This document shows positions 7,003 through 30,500 of a stretch of 64,000 bases of DNA, in pieces. The notes under the pieces are model-generated. The model was not told the origin of the DNA. It did no database searches and was given only the letters and a program-made list of their open reading frames with translations. How positions within the stretch are numbered: position 1 is the first letter of the stretch; the number at the start of each line of letters is the position of its first letter. The translations under genes and the position numbers were made by a program. Source of the DNA: Saccharolobus islandicus REY15A (GTDB taxonomy: Archaea > Thermoproteota > Thermoprotei_A > Sulfolobales > Sulfolobaceae); assembly GCF_000189555.1 (NCBI RefSeq), contig NC_017276.1; one strand, written 5' to 3'.

Positions 7003-7095
<93 letters not shown>

Positions 7096-7153
7096 CTAAC
7101 GTATTTTTGACGTAATTTTTAACGGCTTATCTGATGATTATATCAGATAAAAA

Positions 7154-19869: not shown

Positions 19870-20475
19870 TTATCTCTCTCCAAATCTATACTTATACGTC
19901 TCAATCATACTCCTTAAATTGTCAACCAACATTTTAGTCTCAAAGCTTATGCTCTTCCCTTCCATAGCCTCCTCAGCCCTTGCCAGATACTCCTTAGCCC
20001 TCAAGTAGAGGTCTTTGTTATCATAAGCTACAGCGTTTTGTAAATACATCATGCCAAGCTTAGCTAACTCTGCCACATAATTTTCTGACTCCTTATCTGA
20101 AAACTCTAACGCTTTCTCATACCTCTTAATCACTTTTTCATCAATAGGTTGCCCGCTCTCTGGAGAAATTGTATACTTAGTACTAGCTTCTTTTTTCCTT
20201 ATTCCAGGAGGTCTTATTCCACGCCTCATAAGATATCTGTTAAGGTAAGTTGACAATGTCGCACCTAATGTCGAAAATATTAGAGCGCTTAAGATAGTGG
20301 ATAATATTGAGCTATGCAAAAAGTTATAAATAATATCATTGGCTAAAATAAATACTATAGCTGATGGTAATGCATCAAATAATAGGATAAGTAAGACATA
20401 TTTTAAAGTTGATATCTCTTTAGTAGGACCAAAGATAACCTTCTTTGTTTAATGCTTTTTCTTCTTACTCACCAT
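19870..20475 (-). pseudogene. Membrane protein with TPR-like C-terminus, premature stop at codon 9
   Basis: Frame runs MVSKKKKH*TKKVIFGPTKE...FLHSSILST; TAA at 20449-20451; two TM segments. Confidence 0.6.
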
Positions 20476-22339: not shown

Positions 22340-22369
22340 ATCCGGTTGTCCGGGGTTCAAATCCCCGCG
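22340..22369 (+). repeat. Truncated att copy (30 bp of tRNA-Met 3' half)
   Basis: ATCCGGTTGTCCGGGGTTCAAATCCCCGCG, then diverges; same upstream GTTAAAT-N11-ATTTAAC IR as attR1. Confidence 0.85.
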
Positions 22370-22443
22370 ATAGCATGATATAAATTCAAGACCTTTGTCC
22401 AAAAAACTTTAAATTTCACCCTTTACTTATTTTATGAGGACGT

Positions 22444-22533
22444 GCCGCGGTGGTTTAGCCCGGTCAAGCGCAGGCACCGAAAGAATGCGGGCCTTTCGAG
22501 CCCGTGACCCGGGTTCAAATCCCGGCCGCGGCA
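22444..22533 (+). tRNA. tRNA-Glu(UUC) with about 15-nt non-canonical D-loop intron (about 22468-22482)
   Basis: GCCGCGG/CCGCGGC-A acceptor; CGGGC-CT-TTC-GA-GCCCG anticodon arm; extra GCGCAGGCACCGAAA in the D-loop; TATA CTTTAAA at about 22407. Confidence 0.93.
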
Positions 22534-22689
22534 CTTCATATCATAATATTCATTTACGATTTGTTCTAAAGAACCAATGTAATTATCCCTTCTCTGACCG
22601 TCTTCACCCTTCTCTATGATGTAAACATAATACTTTCCCTTAACCTCACGAATTCTTATATCACCAAATGTGAAAACTTTATTACCCAT
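22491..22689 (-). pseudogene. int: SSV-type integrase N-terminal fragment int(N)
   Basis: MGNKVFTFGDIRIREVKGKYYVYIIEK...RDNYIGSLEQIV...KCRGRDLNPG reading through the antisense tRNA half, the hallmark of partitioned SSV-type integrases. Confidence 0.85.
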
Positions 22690-22968
22690 GCCCTTCCACA
22701 GTTTAAATTTATCACGTAGGCATTTAAAAAGGCTGATAACTATCAAAATTTACGTTGAATTGAAAGGACGTGATAACAATTCCTCAGTTCTGCAAAAAAC
22801 TGAATATGTGATACTTAGCAGCTCTGTCTAAATTCAAGTGCTGCTGCACGCAGCTGCTAAGGAAATTTAGTCTGCAGCTGTAGTTAGAAAATTCAATGAG
22901 ACTCATCTAAGGTTTTCTGACTGTCTCAAAGTCTCAAAGAGGTATAGATAAAAATCGCTTTGTAGGAT

Positions 22969-23622: not shown

Positions 23623-24084
23623 ATGTTAATCGATGACAGAATTTATCGCTTAATTAAATTACTGCTTTGCACTGCTAAAGAGGAGAATACAGAGGTTACT
23701 GCAACTAAACTGCAGAAGATTTTCTTTTTACTTGAGAAGGAGAAAGGGATTCAACTAGGACTGGATTTTAAGCCCTGGTTCTTCGGTCCTTATTCATCAA
23801 AACTACAAGATTATATTGATAAACTAATCGAATCAGGAGAGGTTGATGTTGAAGAGGAGGAAGTAAGAGATCCATTGAGCGGAGTAATAATAGGGTACAA
23901 GAGGAATTACGTTTTAAAGAGTGAGTTAAAGCCTGAGGAAGAGGAAAAGGAGATTGAGATGTTTTTCAGAGAATGGGTTAGGAAGAGTAGGACTGAGATT
24001 CTAAACTACGTCTACAAGAAATACCCGGAATACGCTAAATATTCCATGATTAGAGACAAAGTTTTAAGTAGGTTACAAGAATGA
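23623..24084 (+). CDS. DUF4065/Panacea (SocA-like) antitoxin-domain protein
   Basis: TKLQKIFFLLE...FKPWFFGPYSSKL signature. Confidence 0.75.
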   Translation: MLIDDRIYRLIKLLLCTAKEENTEVTATKLQKIFFLLEKEKGIQLGLDFKPWFFGPYSSKLQDYIDKLIESGEVDVEEEEVRDPLSGVIIGYKRNYVLKSELKPEEEEKEIEMFFREWVRKSRTEILNYVYKKYPEYAKYSMIRDKVLSRLQE

Positions 24085-25064
24085 AGAAGAAGAGGAAGTC
24101 GACTTTTGTTAACTTCCTCTTAAACTCCTTAAGCTTTTTCGATACTACACTAGCTATATACGAAAGTATTCAGAAAGGAGAAAAACCGTATTCAGACATA
24201 AAGTCTCTAGAGGAGCAAAAGATTTTTAATACTGCGAGATCTTTCGAAACCTTAAGTAAGGCCTTTCTTGCAACGTATGGTACACTGATAATTTATCCGG
24301 CCCTTTTGATATCCGTAGTAAAGAAGGGACATGTTAAAGCACCGAGACATTTTCAGAAAATGATTAATTCATTGAATATCTTAATAAGACAAGCCTTAAA
24401 CCGTGAGAAGATTATCGAAAAATTAGGTCACGACCCTATGGGAAGATCTCAAATTCCAGATCTTCTGTCAGCAACCGCGAAACTCTTAGAACAAATCAGG
24501 GAAAAACATTTAGCGGAAATTTATAAAAGCTTATCGAAATATTTAAGAGAGTCAGCTAATCAAAGAAGCTATGATAAACTACTAGAATTGAGAAAGAGAA
24601 TTATAGCCGCAGTCCAATTTAAAGACGCATACAAACAACTACTTGATATAATTGAAAAGTGTATAGAAAAACGCATGGAAGACGAGATTTGCAAAAACTT
24701 GCCAAATGAAAGCGAGCTATTATTAAACTTTTACAAAGAAAAACCATATTTAATCGATCAAGTAATAACAATGCTAGATCTAGGTTTCCAAGAACTTTTC
24801 GATAGTTTGCTATACACAGCCTATTTAGCTAGGGCTGCTGAAACTGCTGATTATATAGTAGGGAGGGAGGAAATAGATGAAAAGTATTTGGAAGAAGTTA
24901 GAGACCACCAAAATGAAATGATAGAGTTTATGAAAGGTATGGCAGAAATTAATAGGGAGTTGGTAAAAGCTGATGAATTAGATGAATTTATGGCAGAAGT
25001 TGAGAGTGAAGCAAGAAAGGAACTACAAAAAGAGACGGAAAAAGAGAAATCGAATAATTCTTAG
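24081..25064 (+). CDS. HEPN-like alpha-helical protein, candidate toxin
   Basis: IFNTARSFETLSKAFL resembles HEPN F.AQQA.EK.LKA.L; later KLGHD; ATGA overlap with the DUF4065 gene. Confidence 0.55.
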   Translation: MKKKRKSTFVNFLLNSLSFFDTTLAIYESIQKGEKPYSDIKSLEEQKIFNTARSFETLSKAFLATYGTLIIYPALLISVVKKGHVKAPRHFQKMINSLNILIRQALNREKIIEKLGHDPMGRSQIPDLLSATAKLLEQIREKHLAEIYKSLSKYLRESANQRSYDKLLELRKRIIAAVQFKDAYKQLLDIIEKCIEKRMEDEICKNLPNESELLLNFYKEKPYLIDQVITMLDLGFQELFDSLLYTAYLARAAETADYIVGREEIDEKYLEEVRDHQNEMIEFMKGMAEINRELVKADELDEFMAEVESEARKELQKETEKEKSNNS

Positions 25065-25446
25065 GGAATTTATTATGAAGAGAAAGAGAGGCTTTTTACA
25101 CGCCAAAAGCAGCAAAGCACTCTGGGCCTAAACTTTCATTTTACTCTTTTTGTAACTCAAGCTTTCAGTAGTAGTAAATACTATAGGTTGGATTTTGCAT
25201 AATATTCGGCTAAGCTAATAAGAGGGAATAAAATAATTATTGTTATGGAATACCATGCGGCTAGCTACGCGCTATATGCGGCTTCATGGCTGTACGAAGG
25301 TGAACTGATAAATGTCACTAACTCAGTGCAGACCAGACGAATTTGCATGCCCTTATTGCGGGGGATGTAATCATATGCCCAGGGTAGGTACGCTTCTAAG
25401 TCTAAGATAAAGGATGAACTAGACCTTATACCATGGGGTAAGTTAG

Positions 25447-26457
25447 ATGATTAGAAATGTGAAAGCTTGTATTAACCTTTTAGAGTGTATTGATAAGAGA
25501 ATAGATAGGATAAAGATTGCAGTAGCTTACGTTAAACTTTCCGGTGTAGAAAAGCTCAGTAGTTTATTAAAAAACGTTAGTGAATGCACTATTGTTACCT
25601 CATTAGATTTTGGGATTACTGAATTAGAAGGGATTAAGAAGTTAAAGGAAGTAGGATGTTCTGTATACATTTACAATAATAGGAAAGAGTTTCATCCAAA
25701 AGTTTACTTATTCGAATCAGAATCACAGAAGTTTGCAATAATAGGTTCCTCGAACCTAAGTGATGGTGCATTAACTGGGAAGAACGTTGAATTTAACCTT
25801 ATGACAAGCGAAAAGAATTTGATAGATTGTGTGGAATCGTTCATTAATAATTTAATAAGTGAGTCAATACTAGTTGATGATAATATATTATCAATTCTTG
25901 AAAGCGGGGGATATAACAACATTAGGCGTGAAAGTTATGATAAGACTGGTTGGAATATTCTTCCTAAGATAAATAAGAATTATTACTGTGAGAAGTTTAA
26001 AGAATTATACAATACTATTCAAGAATACAGGGAAAGGAGTGAATTAAACAGGGAGAGGTCAAGTATCCATAAAATGGCATTGTATAAATTAATTTGCGAT
26101 TTATCTTCTTACGGTTTAAATGTTAATTTGAATGAGGATAAAACCAGAGGTAATGCAGATGCTATTATAAAGGCCGGTAATGAGGTAAAAGTAGTTATTC
26201 AGGGAATGATATTAAATAATAAAACTGCAATCTTACATAAACTAGACGGTTTTGATTACTTTATAATTTTGCTAATTACTAGTCCTATGACATCAGAATA
26301 TTATATATTAAATAAAAGCGAAATAGATAAATTGATTAGAGAGAATATAATTACTTATAATAAAAATATTCAAGCATATAGAATATTTCCTAAAATTTAT
26401 GAAAAATATAGAAGCACATTAAACGAGTTTGTAAATACAATAGTAGGAAGTTCATAA
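25447..26457 (+). CDS. Phospholipase D-family (HKD) nuclease, NgoFVII/BfiI-like, with uncharacterised C-terminal domain
   Basis: IAVAYVKLSGV, TSLDFGITE, FHPKVYLF...IIGSSNLS...NVEFN. Confidence 0.82.
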   Translation: MIRNVKACINLLECIDKRIDRIKIAVAYVKLSGVEKLSSLLKNVSECTIVTSLDFGITELEGIKKLKEVGCSVYIYNNRKEFHPKVYLFESESQKFAIIGSSNLSDGALTGKNVEFNLMTSEKNLIDCVESFINNLISESILVDDNILSILESGGYNNIRRESYDKTGWNILPKINKNYYCEKFKELYNTIQEYRERSELNRERSSIHKMALYKLICDLSSYGLNVNLNEDKTRGNADAIIKAGNEVKVVIQGMILNNKTAILHKLDGFDYFIILLITSPMTSEYYILNKSEIDKLIRENIITYNKNIQAYRIFPKIYEKYRSTLNEFVNTIVGSS

Positions 26458-26580
26458 GTATATTAATCGTAAGTTAAGAATATAGTGTATAAATTAGAGT
26501 GATTTATTTCCTCTATTATGCGCAATATAGTTGTGGTTACTTAGTCTTGATGCATACACTATTATCCGGGCTTCGGAATT

Positions 26581-27054
26581 ATGGCACCGAAAGTAAGACA
26601 GAGTAGCACACAGAACGGAGGACAGGGTAACACTAACCAGAGAGTGATTACGGTTCCTGCCAGCATAGGGAGGCCTACAGGACCTATGGGTATAATAGGG
26701 AGGGTAAGGAATAGAGGCACCGGTACTATAGCCAGGGACGATATAGCCGGAGACAACTTAGAGAGAAAGCCCTACGTACCAAGAGGTTACAAGGTGACGG
26801 AAGAGAAGGACGAAGTAGCAGGTTTTGTACACATGAGGGAGTGGCAAATTAAGGAGACGAGGACGCATGCATTGACTTCGGGGCTTAAGGAGAACTATAA
26901 AGCTGCAGCAAAAGAGTTAGCTAAATCGCTGTCAGTAAAGTTTGACGACCTAATGCAAAAGTACACTGGAATCAGACCTATAGAGGCAGTAAGGAGGGAG
27001 GTTGGAGACTTAGGGAAGAGAAAAACCGAAAGAGTAGAAAAATATAATAAATAA
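26581..27054 (+). CDS. Hypothetical protein (GC-richer, possibly the C-terminal part of a longer gene)
   Basis: 157-aa ORF; frame stays open 10 codons upstream of the ATG. Confidence 0.55.
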   Translation: MAPKVRQSSTQNGGQGNTNQRVITVPASIGRPTGPMGIIGRVRNRGTGTIARDDIAGDNLERKPYVPRGYKVTEEKDEVAGFVHMREWQIKETRTHALTSGLKENYKAAAKELAKSLSVKFDDLMQKYTGIRPIEAVRREVGDLGKRKTERVEKYNK

Positions 27055-27101
27055 CTTCTCTCTTTTTAATCCTTATATATTATTTTGAGGAATCTTTATA
27101 T

Positions 27102-27545
27102 ATGGAGCAGATAATCGAATTTCCTGATATTTTAAAATTAATAGAACACAATAATTTGCCAACCGAAATATATGCACCCGACGGAACCCTGTTGATGAAG
27201 CCATATGGAACGTGGGGAGAACAGCCGTTAGTGCTAAACAGAAAAGTTTGGAGAGTATTTGCAAACTATAGTCTAACAAGTGACGATGAAATAGTCCAAG
27301 TAAACACCACTGGTCAGTTGATTAGAGTAGGAAAAGATGTAGATACAAACGAAATATTGGGCTATGTTAGGAGGTTTAACCCTGGGGCAACGGTAGAGGA
27401 AGTGATATCTGCAATCCTTGAACGTGTTATAGAGGATACTGGGCAATTTAAGAATGATGATGAATTCATGAGCTATGCGTTCTTATTGTATTTAACTCTA
27501 GCTTATGCTATTCATTACGGCCTTCTAATTCTCGTAAAAGATTAG
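27102..27545 (+). CDS. Hypothetical protein
   Basis: Intact 147-aa ORF with C-terminal hydrophobic helix. Confidence 0.7.
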   Translation: MEQIIEFPDILKLIEHNNLPTEIYAPDGTLLMKPYGTWGEQPLVLNRKVWRVFANYSLTSDDEIVQVNTTGQLIRVGKDVDTNEILGYVRRFNPGATVEEVISAILERVIEDTGQFKNDDEFMSYAFLLYLTLAYAIHYGLLILVKD

Positions 27546-27555
27546 ATTTTTTGAA

Positions 27556-27571
27556 TTAACTCCCCAGTTTA
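27556..27571 (-). repeat. Conjugative-plasmid recombination motif copy
   Basis: Reverse complement TAAACTGGGGAGTTAA (15/16 to TAAACTGGGGAGTTTA). Confidence 0.7.
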
Positions 27572-27580
27572 CAGACAGTT

Positions 27581-27619
27581 GAAAGCCTCGCCCCTTCTAG
27601 GGACGGGGAGGAAGCCGAC
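27581..27619 (+). mobile_element. IS200/IS605-type right-end hairpin remnant
   Basis: GAAAGCCTCGCCCCTTCTAGGGACGGGGAGGAAG GC-rich hairpin with the GGGGAGGA tail typical of Sulfolobus tnpB IS ends. Confidence 0.55.
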
Positions 27620-27681
27620 ATTATTCTTACAAATATTATTTCTGAAGAGATAATAAATGGGCAAAAATAAAAACAGAAAAG

Positions 27682-27689
27682 TTTTTAAA
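27682..27689 (+). promoter_or_regulatory. TATA box (TTTTTAAA) with purine-rich BRE upstream of C/D sRNA-1
   Basis: GAAAAG-TTTTTAAA about 25 nt upstream of the 5' stem at 27714-27716. Confidence 0.6.
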
Positions 27690-27715
27690 TGTGTTTTTAC
27701 AGAAGTAGAAAACGG

Positions 27716-27792
27716 GGGATGAGGGGATGATGAGCACGACACGAGTTGATCTATGATAGGACGCCGTTGCTCTGACCTGACCCCCTCATCCC
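27716..27792 (+). ncRNA. Box C/D guide sRNA-1 (element-borne)
   Basis: C ATGATGA 27727-33; 12-nt guide GCACGACACGAG; D' TTGA; C' ATGATAG; 12-nt guide GACGCCGTTGCT; D CTGA 27772-75; 11-bp terminal stem GGGATGAGGGG/CCCCTCATCCC. Confidence 0.82.
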
Positions 27793-27917
27793 TAATTCAT
27801 TACTTATCTTTTCAACTATTAAGCTTTTCTTTCATTGAATTTTGAAAAATTGTATTGAAAGAAGTATAAGCGCTTATCTTTGGATCCCAGCTTTCTTTAT
27901 GCGTTAGAAAAATTGTA

Positions 27918-27933
27918 TAAACTCCCCAGCTTA
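27918..27933 (-). repeat. Conjugative-plasmid recombination motif copy
   Basis: Reverse complement TAAGCTGGGGAGTTTA (15/16). Confidence 0.7.
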
Positions 27934-27946
27934 CCTAGTAAAAATT

Positions 27947-28174
27947 CTATTTAACTTTCTTTTCTAACTCCTCTACCCTCCTCTTCAATTCTTGCAGTTC
28001 CTTAACTATTTCTTCCAAACTCACTTTACTTCCTTCCTTTTCCTTCATATAACACTCAAAAGCGTCTTTCAGCACTTCATACACACTCACTTTCCTTTTC
28101 TCAGCCTCATCTACTATCTTCTTCCATAACTCTTCATCCGGGAAGTAAACCGATTTGTAACCGGGTCTGGGCAT
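27947..28174 (-). CDS. Ribbon-helix-helix (CopG-like) regulator with C-terminal coiled coil
   Basis: KSVYFPDEELWKKIVDEAEKRKVSVYEVLKDAF RHH pattern; heptad tail LEEIVKELQELKRRVEEL. Confidence 0.8.
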   Translation of the reverse strand: MPRPGYKSVYFPDEELWKKIVDEAEKRKVSVYEVLKDAFECYMKEKEGSKVSLEEIVKELQELKRRVEELEKKVK

Positions 28175-28192
28175 TTTTACCTCAATATACTT

Positions 28193-28264
28193 TATTGTAC
28201 TTCAATATAAAAACCTTATTGTACCACAATGTACTGCAGAATTTAGGTATGTGAAAGTACAATA
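28193..28264. promoter_or_regulatory. Divergent promoter with three TATTGTAC boxes
   Basis: TATTGTAC at 28193-28200 and 28217-28224; inverted GTACAATA at 28257-28264; extra GTAC at 28231 and 28267. Confidence 0.6.
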
Positions 28265-28270
28265 TGGTAC

Positions 28271-28344
28271 ATGGGGGGTCAGATGACGAATGGAGCGAGA
28301 ACTGATCCAATGATGAACCAGTTACGAACTGACCCGTCCCTCAT
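28271..28344 (+). ncRNA. Box C/D guide sRNA-2 (element-borne)
   Basis: C ATGACGA 28283-89; 12-nt guide ATGGAGCGAGAA; D' CTGA; C' ATGATGA 28310-16; 12-nt guide ACCAGTTACGAA; D CTGA 28329-32; complementary termini; T-rich tract downstream. Confidence 0.85.
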
Positions 28345-28524
28345 TTTTCCTTTTATGAAATAAGAGATAAAAAGAGTTGCGTAAACTAAGGAGTTAACGC
28401 TTTGAAACGCCTATCGCTTTCTGCTATCACTCTATTCTTCTTTTCTTTTACAAGATGATTCTATTTCTACTTTTACGTGCAACACAAAACGTTTTCTAGT
28501 CACGTTTCACTGAAATGCTATCTA

Positions 28525-28569
<45 letters not shown>

Positions 28570-28770: not shown

Positions 28771-29149
28771 GGGTCATTCACGCATTCTTTGCGAATTCAG
28801 TTTATTTAAAGAATCGTAATGAATTTAATCAAACACCACCCCACTGACTAGGTGGAGATTCACGCTCAGCAGTTTACTTTGTTTTATCCATCTTATTCAT
28901 GAATTACAATTCACAAAAGAGACTTGAATCGCCCATTCACCCAATTTCGCCGGAGCTCTTAAATAACATAATAAGATTACATAGAATTCTGAAAATGTAA
29001 AGTTTCAAAATTGGATCGGACAAGAATTGATTAACGTTACTGATCCATTATGGGAATTTTTAACAATCAGTTACGTAGATGGTAGAATATGATTCTAAAA
29101 TAAGATAGAAAACACATATTAATATTGTAATCAGTGCATGAATGGCTCG

Positions 29150-29482
29150 TCATCTTTTCTCTGTTTCTTCTTCCTCATCACTTAGGAATTTATTTAGAAA
29201 TTCGTCCACATATTGTTTCTCTCCAAATATAACTATATCATCAATTGCTTCATCATAATACTTTTTAATTTTATTTATCAGATTTGTCATGTTATATATA
29301 TCGAAGTCTAGAACTTCTCCTCCAGATAATTTATCCTCTTCGTATACGATTATTATCATGTTTTTATATACGGAAAATCTAAACGCAGATATTATCTTGC
29401 CGTCTTCAACTTTTTTATAGAGCATTATTAACATTAGGGGTTCTGTGATTCCATGCCTAGTGTATTCAGCATGTTTTATCAT
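29150..29482 (-). CDS. Conserved hypothetical protein
   Basis: Start moved to MIKHAEY to avoid overlap with the upstream gene; acidic C-terminus. Confidence 0.7.
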   Translation of the reverse strand: MIKHAEYTRHGITEPLMLIMLYKKVEDGKIISAFRFSVYKNMIIIVYEEDKLSGGEVLDFDIYNMTNLINKIKKYYDEAIDDIVIFGEKQYVDEFLNKFLSDEEEETEKR

Positions 29483-29513
29483 GAAATAATAAGAAGAGAG
29501 AGTGAATATATTT

Positions 29514-30500
29514 TTACTCTTGATTCTTCTGAATGTACTTTTCATAGAACGAGATTGCTTTTCGTAGATTAGACACCTCTTCCTCATAACTGGCTAGCTC
29601 TGAATAAGCCCTAGCTAGGAAAAGGTAGTCTTGAAGTTTTTCAGCAGTTTCTATTGCCTCTTTAAGAAATTGTACTATCTTCGTTCTCTTGTAAATGTCA
29701 TAGAGGATGTTTAGCTTGTCTTTACTATCCTCAAGATTTTTTATCTTTTCTAATATTTCCACAAGCAAAGATGGGTCTCTATTCGATAGTTTGTATAGTG
29801 GTTTTAATTGACTATTGTAATCTCCAAGTTTTTCATAAATTTGGATCGCTTTTCTTAGATCTTCCTCATTATCCGATATTGAAAGTATATCCGCTAGAAT
29901 TTTTTCATTTCCTAAAACTGTTGCAATACTTTTCGCCTTTTCTAGTAGTTTAGTGTCATTATAATATTTAGCTAATGCAGCATATGTTATTGCGAGATCC
30001 TCAGAGGGAATTTCGAATTCTTCCAACAATTCTCTCGCTTCTTCTACATATTTGATTTCCCCTAATGCTAGACAAACTTTCGCCAATAGTTTTTTGCTTA
30101 GCGCATTTATCTCTTCTTTCGAGTTTAATACTAAGCTTTTTAGTGTGTTATACGCGTTTGATAGCTCCCCTTTTTGAAAATAAGCTAAAGATAAATTATA
30201 TAGAATGATATTTTTATCTTCATTATTTAGATTATACTCGCTAAGTAATTCTTTAAAGGTTAAAATTGCAATATCTGGCTTTCTTTTCTCTAGATATATC
30301 AGCCCCAAAAAATTTAGGATAGTAGGGTTTTTCTTCTCAATTTCATTTGCTATAGATAATGCTCTATCTAGGAACTCCATATTTTTATATTTTTTATAAA
30401 GATTATAATATTCTTGAATAAGTGTAGTATATAGAATATTTCTCTTCTCCTTGTTCTTCTCCTTTTTTAGTTGTTCTTCAAGCTCTGCTATTCTTTCCAT
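29514..30500 (-). CDS. Tetratricopeptide-repeat protein
   Basis: Repeated helical TPR-like units (LNFLGLIY, YNLSLAY, LARAYSELA). Confidence 0.8.
   Translation of the reverse strand: MERIAELEEQLKKEKNKEKRNILYTTLIQEYYNLYKKYKNMEFLDRALSIANEIEKKNPTILNFLGLIYLEKRKPDIAILTFKELLSEYNLNNEDKNIILYNLSLAYFQKGELSNAYNTLKSLVLNSKEEINALSKKLLAKVCLALGEIKYVEEARELLEEFEIPSEDLAITYAALAKYYNDTKLLEKAKSIATVLGNEKILADILSISDNEEDLRKAIQIYEKLGDYNSQLKPLYKLSNRDPSLLVEILEKIKNLEDSKDKLNILYDIYKRTKIVQFLKEAIETAEKLQDYLFLARAYSELASYEEEVSNLRKAISFYEKYIQKNQE

Follow-up and report, generated by a model that had tools for sequence, protein, structure and literature searches.

A 64,000-nt stretch of the Saccharolobus islandicus REY15A genome (contig NC_017276.1; referred to below as the window) contains two units with the complete anatomy of box C/D small RNA (sRNA) genes, unit 1 and unit 2, which both lie on the plus strand, on either side of a 75-codon minus-strand gene for a probable ribbon-helix-helix (RHH) protein. 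We conclude that the two units probably belong to a methylation-guide RNA family of Sulfolobales conjugative plasmids and integrative elements, and not to the core chromosome. Their anatomy, homology, conservation pattern and guide complementarity were read directly from the sequences.

Archaeal C/D guide RNAs, whose repertoires are large and change fast, have so far been regarded as housekeeping chromosomal genes. A conserved cassette on self-transmissible plasmids would provide a specific way for such genes to spread horizontally and renew their guides, and raises the possibility that mobile elements edit the modification of the host ribosome. C/D sRNAs are well known; promoter-equipped, regulator-linked, guide-swapping cassettes on conjugative plasmids are apparently undescribed. 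A literature search found no description of C/D sRNAs on Sulfolobus plasmids, although older plasmid papers or the 2023 C/D RNA profile of REY15A might mention them (Wang, Wu & Ye 2023, doi 10.1007/s11427-022-2412-3, as cited in PMC11077068). A 2021 specialist review stated that the mobile features of C/D guide RNA genes were still undiscovered (PMC7994747). In addition, REY15A is a genetic model for which methylation and C/D RNA profiles have been published, and the conjugative plasmid pKEF9 conjugates into it (PMC4872121).

The two units and their relatives on mobile elements

Unit 1 (27714–27792, +) is enclosed by a 5' stem GGGGGATGAGGGG (27714–27726) and a 3' stem CCCCCTCATCCC (27781–27792), which form a GC-rich terminal helix of 12 bp. 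From 5' to 3' it consists of box C ATGATGA (27727–27733), the 12-nt D' guide GCACGACACGAG (27734–27745), the D' box TTGA (27746–27749) followed by the 4-nt spacer TCTA, the C' box TGATAG (27754–27759), the 12-nt D guide GACGCCGTTGCT (27760–27771) and box D CTGA (27772–27775). Unit 2 (28273–28344, +) has a weak terminal helix and contains box C ATGACGA (28283–28289), one change from RUGAUGA, the 12-nt D' guide ATGGAGCGAGAA (28290–28301), the D' box CTGA (28302–28305), the C' box TGATGA (28311–28316, preceded by an A at 28310), the 12-nt D guide ACCAGTTACGAA (28317–28328) and box D CTGA (28329–28332). It is followed by a T-rich run, TTTTTCCTTTT (28345–28355, +), likely an archaeal terminator of unit 2. 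Direct reading of the sequence bore out the preliminary description, in which two complete C/D units with four 12-nt guides had been proposed. Both units have the terminal C/D boxes, internal C'/D' boxes and approximately 12-nt spacing of archaeal C/D sRNAs. Guides in the homologues measure 11–12 nt, and their terminal helices 7–13 bp. In unit 1 the D' UUGA pairs with the C' UGAUAG through an A–U pair instead of the usual kink-loop (k-loop) G–C pair, and this change is retained in pNOB8, pSOG1, pAH1 and pYN01. In kink-turn (k-turn) pairing geometry, such a paired change is tolerated by real k-loops.

A regular-expression search for box C/D architecture over the window returned four loci, two of which were units 1 and 2. 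Dinucleotide-preserving shuffles (n = 100) averaged 0.18 loci, and no shuffled locus had two or fewer box mismatches. Moreover, an E-value scan with Rfam stacked a dozen archaeal C/D families exactly on both units, the best being snoPyro_CD with 28.1 bits and an E-value of 0.002 (gathering threshold 45), and the predicted fold of the unit 1 RNA has an energy of −32.5 kcal/mol (z = −4.1). If the units were chance box-like motifs in AT-rich intergenic DNA that give rise to no RNA, the shortness of the boxes and the Rfam scores below gathering would be accounted for. However, the shuffles contained nothing of like quality, and over 20 homologous loci show the entire architecture again, their boxes, promoters and helices being conserved. 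This explanation therefore retains almost no weight and is, on the comparative sequence data, already effectively refuted. Units 1 and 2 are very likely real C/D sRNA genes of a mobile family.

The cassette is 74–95% identical to pNOB8, pKEF9, pSOG1/2, pAH1, pYN01, pARN3/4, pHVE14, pING1, pB12E5 and pRT2. PLSDB contained 16 matching records, 15 of them Sulfolobus, Saccharolobus or Acidianus plasmids and one a weak 55-bp match in a Clostridioides plasmid. At the position of unit 1 (slot 1), C/D sRNAs were found in pNOB8, pSOG1, pAH1, pYN01, pARN3, pARN4, pHVE14 and pRT2. The guides of unit 1 are the same in pNOB8, where the core from box C to box D differs by a single spacer nucleotide, and differ in the other slot-1 plasmids. 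At the position of unit 2 (slot 2), C/D sRNAs were found in pKEF9, pB12E5 and pRT2 and in six chromosomal integrated elements, namely those of M. sedula, S. shibatae, S. solfataricus P2, an S. tokodaii-like strain, Sulfuracidifex tepidarius and S. ohwakuensis. The gene order in pKEF9 is RHH, sRNA, PlrA and integrase, with PlrA and integrase deleted in the window, and the homologues in other genomes neighbor integrase fragments, PlrA and tRNA genes. All homologues found lay on plasmids or in integrated elements beside integrase or PlrA genes and none in an obvious core context; a restriction of the homologues to the core chromosome, which the preliminary description had named as a refutation, was thus not encountered.

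Comparison of the copies revealed the expected combination of conserved boxes and variable guides, and the units thus pass the check on box conservation named in the preliminary description. Mean pairwise identity in slot 1 was 0.82–1.00 for the boxes, 0.49 for the D' guide and 0.44 for the D guide; the corresponding values in slot 2 were 0.90–1.00, 0.46 and 0.79, the slot-2 D guide having the conserved core GTTACGA. The non-coding flanks are 84–90% identical across copies, well above most guides, and the terminal helix is kept in every copy with differing sequences (−11 to −29 kcal/mol). The modules appear to be exchangeable, because a slot-2-type RNA occupies slot 1 in pRT2 and the S. tokodaii-like element keeps the terminal stem of unit 1 around different inner boxes and guides. 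These two cases lend some support to the earlier suggestion that the units form one family with swapped guides. The related 3' ends that had prompted this suggestion are present here, but the unit 2 tail reads CCCCGCCTTATAC in other elements, and the resemblance is therefore weak evidence for common descent.

In pKEF9 (locus L001, 1419–1990), pING1 (L010, 1955–2530) and pB12E5 (L004, 1974–2530), the slot-1 promoter drives a RelE/ParE toxin gene, and a small convergent open reading frame (ORF) nearby may encode the antitoxin. Judged by its contents, slot 1 behaves as a cargo position. The slot-1 RNA of pARN3 (L007, ~1529–1615) is aberrant: 32 nt separate box C from CTGA, including a possible hairpin CCCTCG/CGAGGG, and a normal C'-guide-D half follows. 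Further C/D sRNAs were observed elsewhere on these plasmids. One canonical copy, ATGATGA-AGAGATGACGTG-CTGA-GAGTA-TGAGGA-AAGACTGCCACA-CTGA, occurs in pAH1 (L297, 10095–10144, +) and pYN01 (L298, 24961–25010, −) with one guide change between the plasmids; it lies in the conjugation section, directly upstream of a large DUF87/TraG-like ATPase gene, and no rRNA target was found for it. Yet another occurs in pRT2 (L011, 2442–2488). A search of IMG/VR with two specific box patterns gave no matches, and a metagenome scan with the loose pattern AGAAGTAGAAAN{5,25}TGATGA gave chance matches only. The Rfam assignment of one S. solfataricus homologue to sR3 (41.5 vs. 41) was rejected, as sR3 is a Pyrococcus family that matches in the boxes only; the S. 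acidocaldarius sR3 is a different RNA from this match.

Complementarity of the guides to ribosomal RNA

The guides were compared with Sulfolobales 16S and 23S ribosomal RNA (rRNA), with pairing required across the D+5 position, and scored against shuffled guides. The rRNAs were those of Stygiolobus, Metallosphaera and Acidianus in place of REY15A, from operons located through a 16S 3'-end pattern. The D' guide of unit 1 forms 11 contiguous pairs (10 Watson–Crick and one G–U) with the 16S sequence CUCGUGUUGUG (P ~0.003), in which the D+5 nucleotide is the equivalent of E. coli U1073. The duplex energy at this site is −17.8 kcal/mol, compared with −12.6 kcal/mol at the next-best rRNA site, and four Sulfolobales as well as S. 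acidocaldarius have the U1073 site in identical form. This D' guide is identical in four independent elements, whereas the D guide beside it varies. The D guide of unit 1 can form 7 + 3 pairs around a bulge at a site 27 nt downstream from the D' target, a match that is only suggestive. On these sequence matches, we regard the chances that unit 1 directs methylation at the predicted 16S uridine in REY15A as about even.

The slot-2 guides point to a different region of 16S rRNA. The D' guide of pKEF9 slot 2 matches 11 nt of 16S perfectly (CCCGUCGCUCC, E. coli 1402–1412, P ~0.003), and this match holds in four Sulfolobales species; S. acidocaldarius 16S contains both target strings. Across the slot-2 copies, the D' guides slide over 1398–1412, the S. 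solfataricus version placing D+5 on C1402. The core GUUACGA of the slot-2 D guides pairs with 16S 1495–1501, with D+5 at U1498, and the D guide of S. tepidarius forms 10 contiguous pairs with GUCGUAACAAGG. By sequence, the two strands that form the top of 16S helix 44 (1398–1412 and 1494–1505) are both matched by complementary guides in the unit 2 family. The REY15A unit 2 guides form 8 and 7 contiguous pairs at the helix 44 sites, which are their best and second-best 16S sites.

Several observations weigh against the conclusion that these RNAs are a family of methylation guides. The D guide of unit 1 and both guides of unit 2 reach only 7–8 contiguous rRNA pairs; by the rRNA test, orphans comprise the D guide of unit 1 as well as the majority of slot-1 guides on the other plasmids. 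Only 2 of 36 mobile-element guides scored clearly above shuffles against Stygiolobus rRNA, a test that is conservative because a likely genuine host guide (described below) reached only P 0.037. No curated C/D family reached its Rfam gathering threshold on either unit, as would be expected because those families are guide-specific. A covariation count on a MAFFT alignment of the stems, in which the G-rich and C-rich arms misalign, gave no signal. The fold of the REY15A unit 2 RNA is weak (z = −0.1), and its TATA-like element TTTAGGTA (28242–28249) shows AA changed to GG within the family consensus ATTTAAATAT. Since the TATA is mutated, box C is a variant with C at position 5 and the stem is weak, the REY15A unit 2 is probably decaying, and its complementarity is weakened as well; the promoter of unit 1 is intact. 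The S. ohwakuensis copy with the same guides as unit 2 has the degenerate boxes GTGATAA and TAATGA, which suggests that this sub-lineage is not under selection.

These points would suit the explanation that the RNAs form C/D ribonucleoproteins (RNPs) but are selfish or neutral passengers, whose guides change by drift or exchange and are not selected for any target, so that methylation would be of no consequence to either host or element. Most guides were no better than shuffled controls against rRNA, guide identity of 0.44–0.50 approaches that of unrelated sequence, and the REY15A unit 2 and S. ohwakuensis copies appear decayed. Targets on the same or other plasmids did not exceed chance either: a comparison of the guides with seven complete plasmids and the window yielded only the trivial antisense of each gene, apart from one perfect 12-mer between the pARN4 D guide and window position 20216, of which ~0.6 are expected by chance. 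However, plasmids of Icelandic, Japanese, Chinese and US origin have kept boxes, promoters and terminal helices, and this speaks for selection acting on the RNP. Moreover, it is the sole strongly 16S-matching guide that has stayed identical in four elements, and the slot-2 D guide core is conserved at 0.79. The flanks are far more conserved than the guides, a pattern more readily explained by replacement or by diversifying selection than by simple drift. We consider the passenger explanation unlikely, though it keeps an appreciable share of the probability, and favor a guide family. CRISPR-repeat targeting was also dropped, since the guides are GC-rich and Sulfolobus CRISPR repeats are AT-rich.

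Control regions, the RHH protein and the host element

Unit 1 is preceded by a conserved slot-1 promoter block (27620–27712, +), which includes the TATA TTTTTAAA at 27682–27689, about 25 nt ahead of the stem; the TATA box of its own that had been ascribed to unit 1 is indeed present. By blastn the block is 84–90% identical to pSOG1, pHVE14, pARN3, pYN01, pARN4 and pAH1, whereas an ungapped calculation underestimates the conservation owing to indels. Unit 2 and the RHH gene are separated by a divergent control region (28175–28272), with the RHH gene TATA on the minus strand at ~28206–28213. The divergent arrangement agrees with the promoter sharing proposed earlier, but the unit 2 TATA departs from the consensus as described above. 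Repeat analysis identified five GTAC repeats in this region, at 28197, 28221, 28231, 28257 and 28267, which overlap both divergent promoters. The GTAC pattern and the consensus TATA are kept in 8 other elements, and another GTAC precedes plrA in the plasmids. The repeats are likely an operator, and an autoregulatory role for the RHH protein is plausible because conserved GTAC repeats cover both promoters.

The 75-aa protein (27947–28174, −) is predicted to combine a probable RHH DNA-binding fold with a C-terminal coiled-coil helix. Its gene is present exactly in REY15A (CP002425.1) at ~1.39 Mb (1,391,947–1,392,174), with the same neighboring genes. The protein had been called CopG/RHH at the outset, and this identity is supported by fold but not by sequence: Pfam RHH_1 matched with an E-value of 0.23 and 11.9 bits (cut-off 20.5), so that no RHH profile match was reached, and a PDB profile search was dominated by coiled-coil matches. 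In contrast, the AlphaFold2 model (mean predicted local distance difference test score, pLDDT, 79) has an extended N-terminus followed by helices 14–27, 31–48 and 53–74, consistent with a beta-alpha-alpha fold. The top Foldseek matches in the PDB were nearly all RHH proteins, including MatP, CopA(SO), CdbA, pRN1 ORF56 (3ft7), CopG and Arc, with modest significance (TM to target ~0.7, E-values 0.5–2). In addition, 59 homologue clusters occur across the Sulfolobaceae, with the UniRef name CopG/RHH. On the model, the protein is a probable RHH DNA-binding regulator.

The tight linkage to the RHH gene, with an operator region in common, would also suit RNAs that act through a k-turn RNP or as antisense and do not guide methylation, for example in copy-number control together with the RHH protein, as an L7Ae-binding translational regulator or as a sink for C/D proteins. 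That slot 1 may hold a toxin gene in place of the RNA, and that many guides are orphans, point the same way. However, the 12-nt spacing, the double C/D and C'/D' architecture and the compensatory C'/D' change exceed the needs of a k-turn decoy, and the guides showed no complementarity to the RHH mRNA or neighboring transcripts. As a sponge, one or two genes would be weak against the many C/D RNAs of the host. We therefore regard a non-guide role as distinctly improbable, and the methylation-guide reading remains preferred.

Between unit 1 and the 3' end of the RHH gene lies a conserved non-coding element (27832–27917) with two GAAAAATTGTAT repeats around the palindrome ATAAGCGCTTAT. This element of ~85 nt is conserved in all the conjugative plasmids and in the fusellovirus SSV2, where it lies right beside the 3' end of int. 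Plasmids and viruses may thus have in common a site for protein binding or for recombination. A near-palindromic plasmid motif, TAAACTCCCCAGTTTA, occurs just past the stop of a 147-aa ORF (27556–27571, +), and a second copy, TAAACTCCCCAG(C/T)TTA, 14 nt past the RHH stop codon (27918–27933, +); a third copy in the window is at 28382. The bracketing of unit 1 by this motif was rejected as meaningful because each conjugative plasmid carries 15–23 copies, often directly downstream of genes. It corresponds to a motif for which a role in recombination has been proposed in these plasmids, but where it lies would also suit a terminator or a protein-binding site.

The cassette is located in an element at a tRNA-Glu gene. 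The tRNA-Glu(UUC) gene (22444–22533, +; Rfam tRNA 56.8 bits; anticodon loop CUUUCGA) has a 23-nt D-loop insertion and is the integration target, its 3' part forming the left attachment site (attL). Two 45-nt direct att repeats that are 98% identical, at 22491–22535 and 28525–28569 (the right copy, attR, repeating the 3' half of tRNA-Glu), define by sequence a 6-kb integrated element, in line with the att-bounded tRNA-Glu element proposed earlier. An N-terminal fragment of an SSV-type integrase (22432–22746, −; Pfam SSV1_ORF_D-335, E-value 2e-13) reads into the tRNA. The C-terminal part is absent at the other end, where the minus-strand translation beside attR is full of stops, and the truncated integrase marks the element as an immobile remnant. 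The fragment showed no similarity to the pKEF9 and pNOB8 integrases, PlrA and conjugation genes are missing, and the interval from one att site to the other has nothing resembling TraG or TrbE. The plasmid-type character proposed in the preliminary description holds for the cassette, which is homologous to Sulfolobales conjugative plasmids, but not for the element as a whole: because the integrase is SSV-type and not pNOB8/pKEF9-type, the element reads as a mosaic and not simply as a conjugative-plasmid remnant. The HEPN-like ribotoxin suggested as a neighbor found no support, since Pfam, NCBIfam and PADLOC detected no HEPN domain in the ORFs at 23623–27545.

Other features of the element and its surroundings were recorded. 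The cargo at 23623–26457 looks defence-like, with a 153-aa PDC-M19A/DarG-C-like protein overlapping a family-less 327-aa protein, followed by a 336-aa PLD-family nuclease (NgoFVII N-terminal, ZacB or DrmC-like matches). A 3' tRNA fragment, TCCGGTTGTCCGGGGTTCAAATCCCCGCG (22340–22372), sits 75 nt upstream of tRNA-Glu; it duplicates the 3' half of a tRNA with an intron at 7004–7095 and was probably left behind by a different, earlier integration event. ARAGORN in bacterial mode misnamed the tRNAs at 7004–7096 (SeC) and 22444–22534 (Ser), owing to the intron and the D-loop insertion, respectively; the anticodon loops in the Rfam alignments agree with CAU (Met) and UUC (Glu). Just past attR, in host DNA outside the element, lies a third C/D sRNA candidate (29131–29181, −), which reads GTGATGA-GGAAGAAGAAA-CAGA-GAAAAGA-TGACGA-GCCATTCATGCA-CTGA and overlaps the 3' end of the ORF at 29150–29587. 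Its D guide has a 10-nt pairing with 23S GCAUGAAUGG (P 0.037), and the RNA is also present in S. shibatae B12 (L271, 303–353). By its sequence it is probably a genuine host guide RNA.

Proposed mechanism and comparison with known systems

In the proposed mechanism, the REY15A units survive in the 6-kb immobile remnant at tRNA-Glu, and each RNA would be transcribed from its own promoter, slot 1 driving a C/D sRNA or a RelE/ParE toxin depending on the plasmid. The RHH protein probably regulates itself and the slot-2 RNA together through the GTAC operator. The transcripts would adopt a structure with a terminal helix and with k-turns at C/D and C'/D', to which the host proteins L7Ae, Nop5 and fibrillarin would be recruited; 2'-O-methylation by the resulting RNP would fall on the target nucleotide that pairs with guide position five, counted upstream from D or D'. 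For unit 1, which looks intact, the D' guide would most likely direct methylation of the U1073 equivalent within CUCGUGUUGUG, and the unit 2 family would be directed at both strands atop 16S helix 44, in the decoding centre.

That such methylation is selected for the benefit of the element seems doubtful. The strongest version, in which elements carry regulated, exchangeable guide cassettes that reprogram the host C/D machinery to methylate critical 16S sites (helix 44 at ~1402–1407 and 1498; head at ~1073), is speculative and, in our judgment, unlikely. If it were true, fast guide turnover would reflect selection, possibly driven by compound or toxin sensitivity, element-favoring translation or conflict between elements. 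Moreover, the cassettes would parallel the plasmid-borne rRNA methyltransferases, but with RNA as the guide, and would give archaea their first case of mobile C/D guide RNAs.

Plasmid-borne bacterial base methyltransferases of 16S helix 44, ArmA/Rmt (G1405) and NpmA (A1408), confer demonstrated resistance phenotypes. The analogy to them is functional only, as they are protein enzymes, whereas the predicted modification here is RNA-guided ribose methylation by archaeal host enzymes. Epstein-Barr virus v-snoRNA1, an intron-derived C/D box RNA of a eukaryotic virus that uses host core proteins, is likewise a C/D RNA of a mobile element but belongs to another domain of life; to our knowledge, no rRNA target has been established for it. 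The control modules of pMV158 and pRN1 (ORF56), which combine CopG (RHH) with a small RNA, resemble the cassette in that a plasmid control region combines a small RHH repressor gene with an adjacent gene for a small RNA. However, their counter-transcripts are antisense to the rep mRNA, whereas the RNAs here are C/D guides and showed no complementarity to their neighbors.

The chromosomal C/D sRNAs of Sulfolobus, Pyrococcus and Pyrobaculum have the same boxes, 12-nt guides and terminal helix, a length of ~55–80 nt and D+5-rule complementarity to rRNA; dual guides that address adjacent strands within a single rRNA helix, also in common, are a theme described by Dennis et al. (2015, PMC4644070). 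In contrast to these, the units here lie on mobile elements, have conserved promoters of their own and are linked to an RHH gene; the terminal helix of unit 1 is unusually long (12 bp, GC-rich), and they have no curated Rfam match. The nearest precedent is provided by the C/D sRNA elements of Pyrobaculum calidifontis that resemble miniature inverted-repeat transposable elements (MITEs) (Lui et al. 2018, PMC6009581). Points of resemblance are inverted repeats at the flanks, guides that are orphan or not conserved, and a setting in unstable parts of the genome. In the present case a terminal inverted repeat was observed, but each unit occurs only once in the window, and the plasmids carry one or two copies each. 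Whereas the P. calidifontis elements are multi-copy and chromosomal with degenerate internal boxes, the units described here are single-copy plasmid cargo with canonical boxes, promoters and a protein partner.

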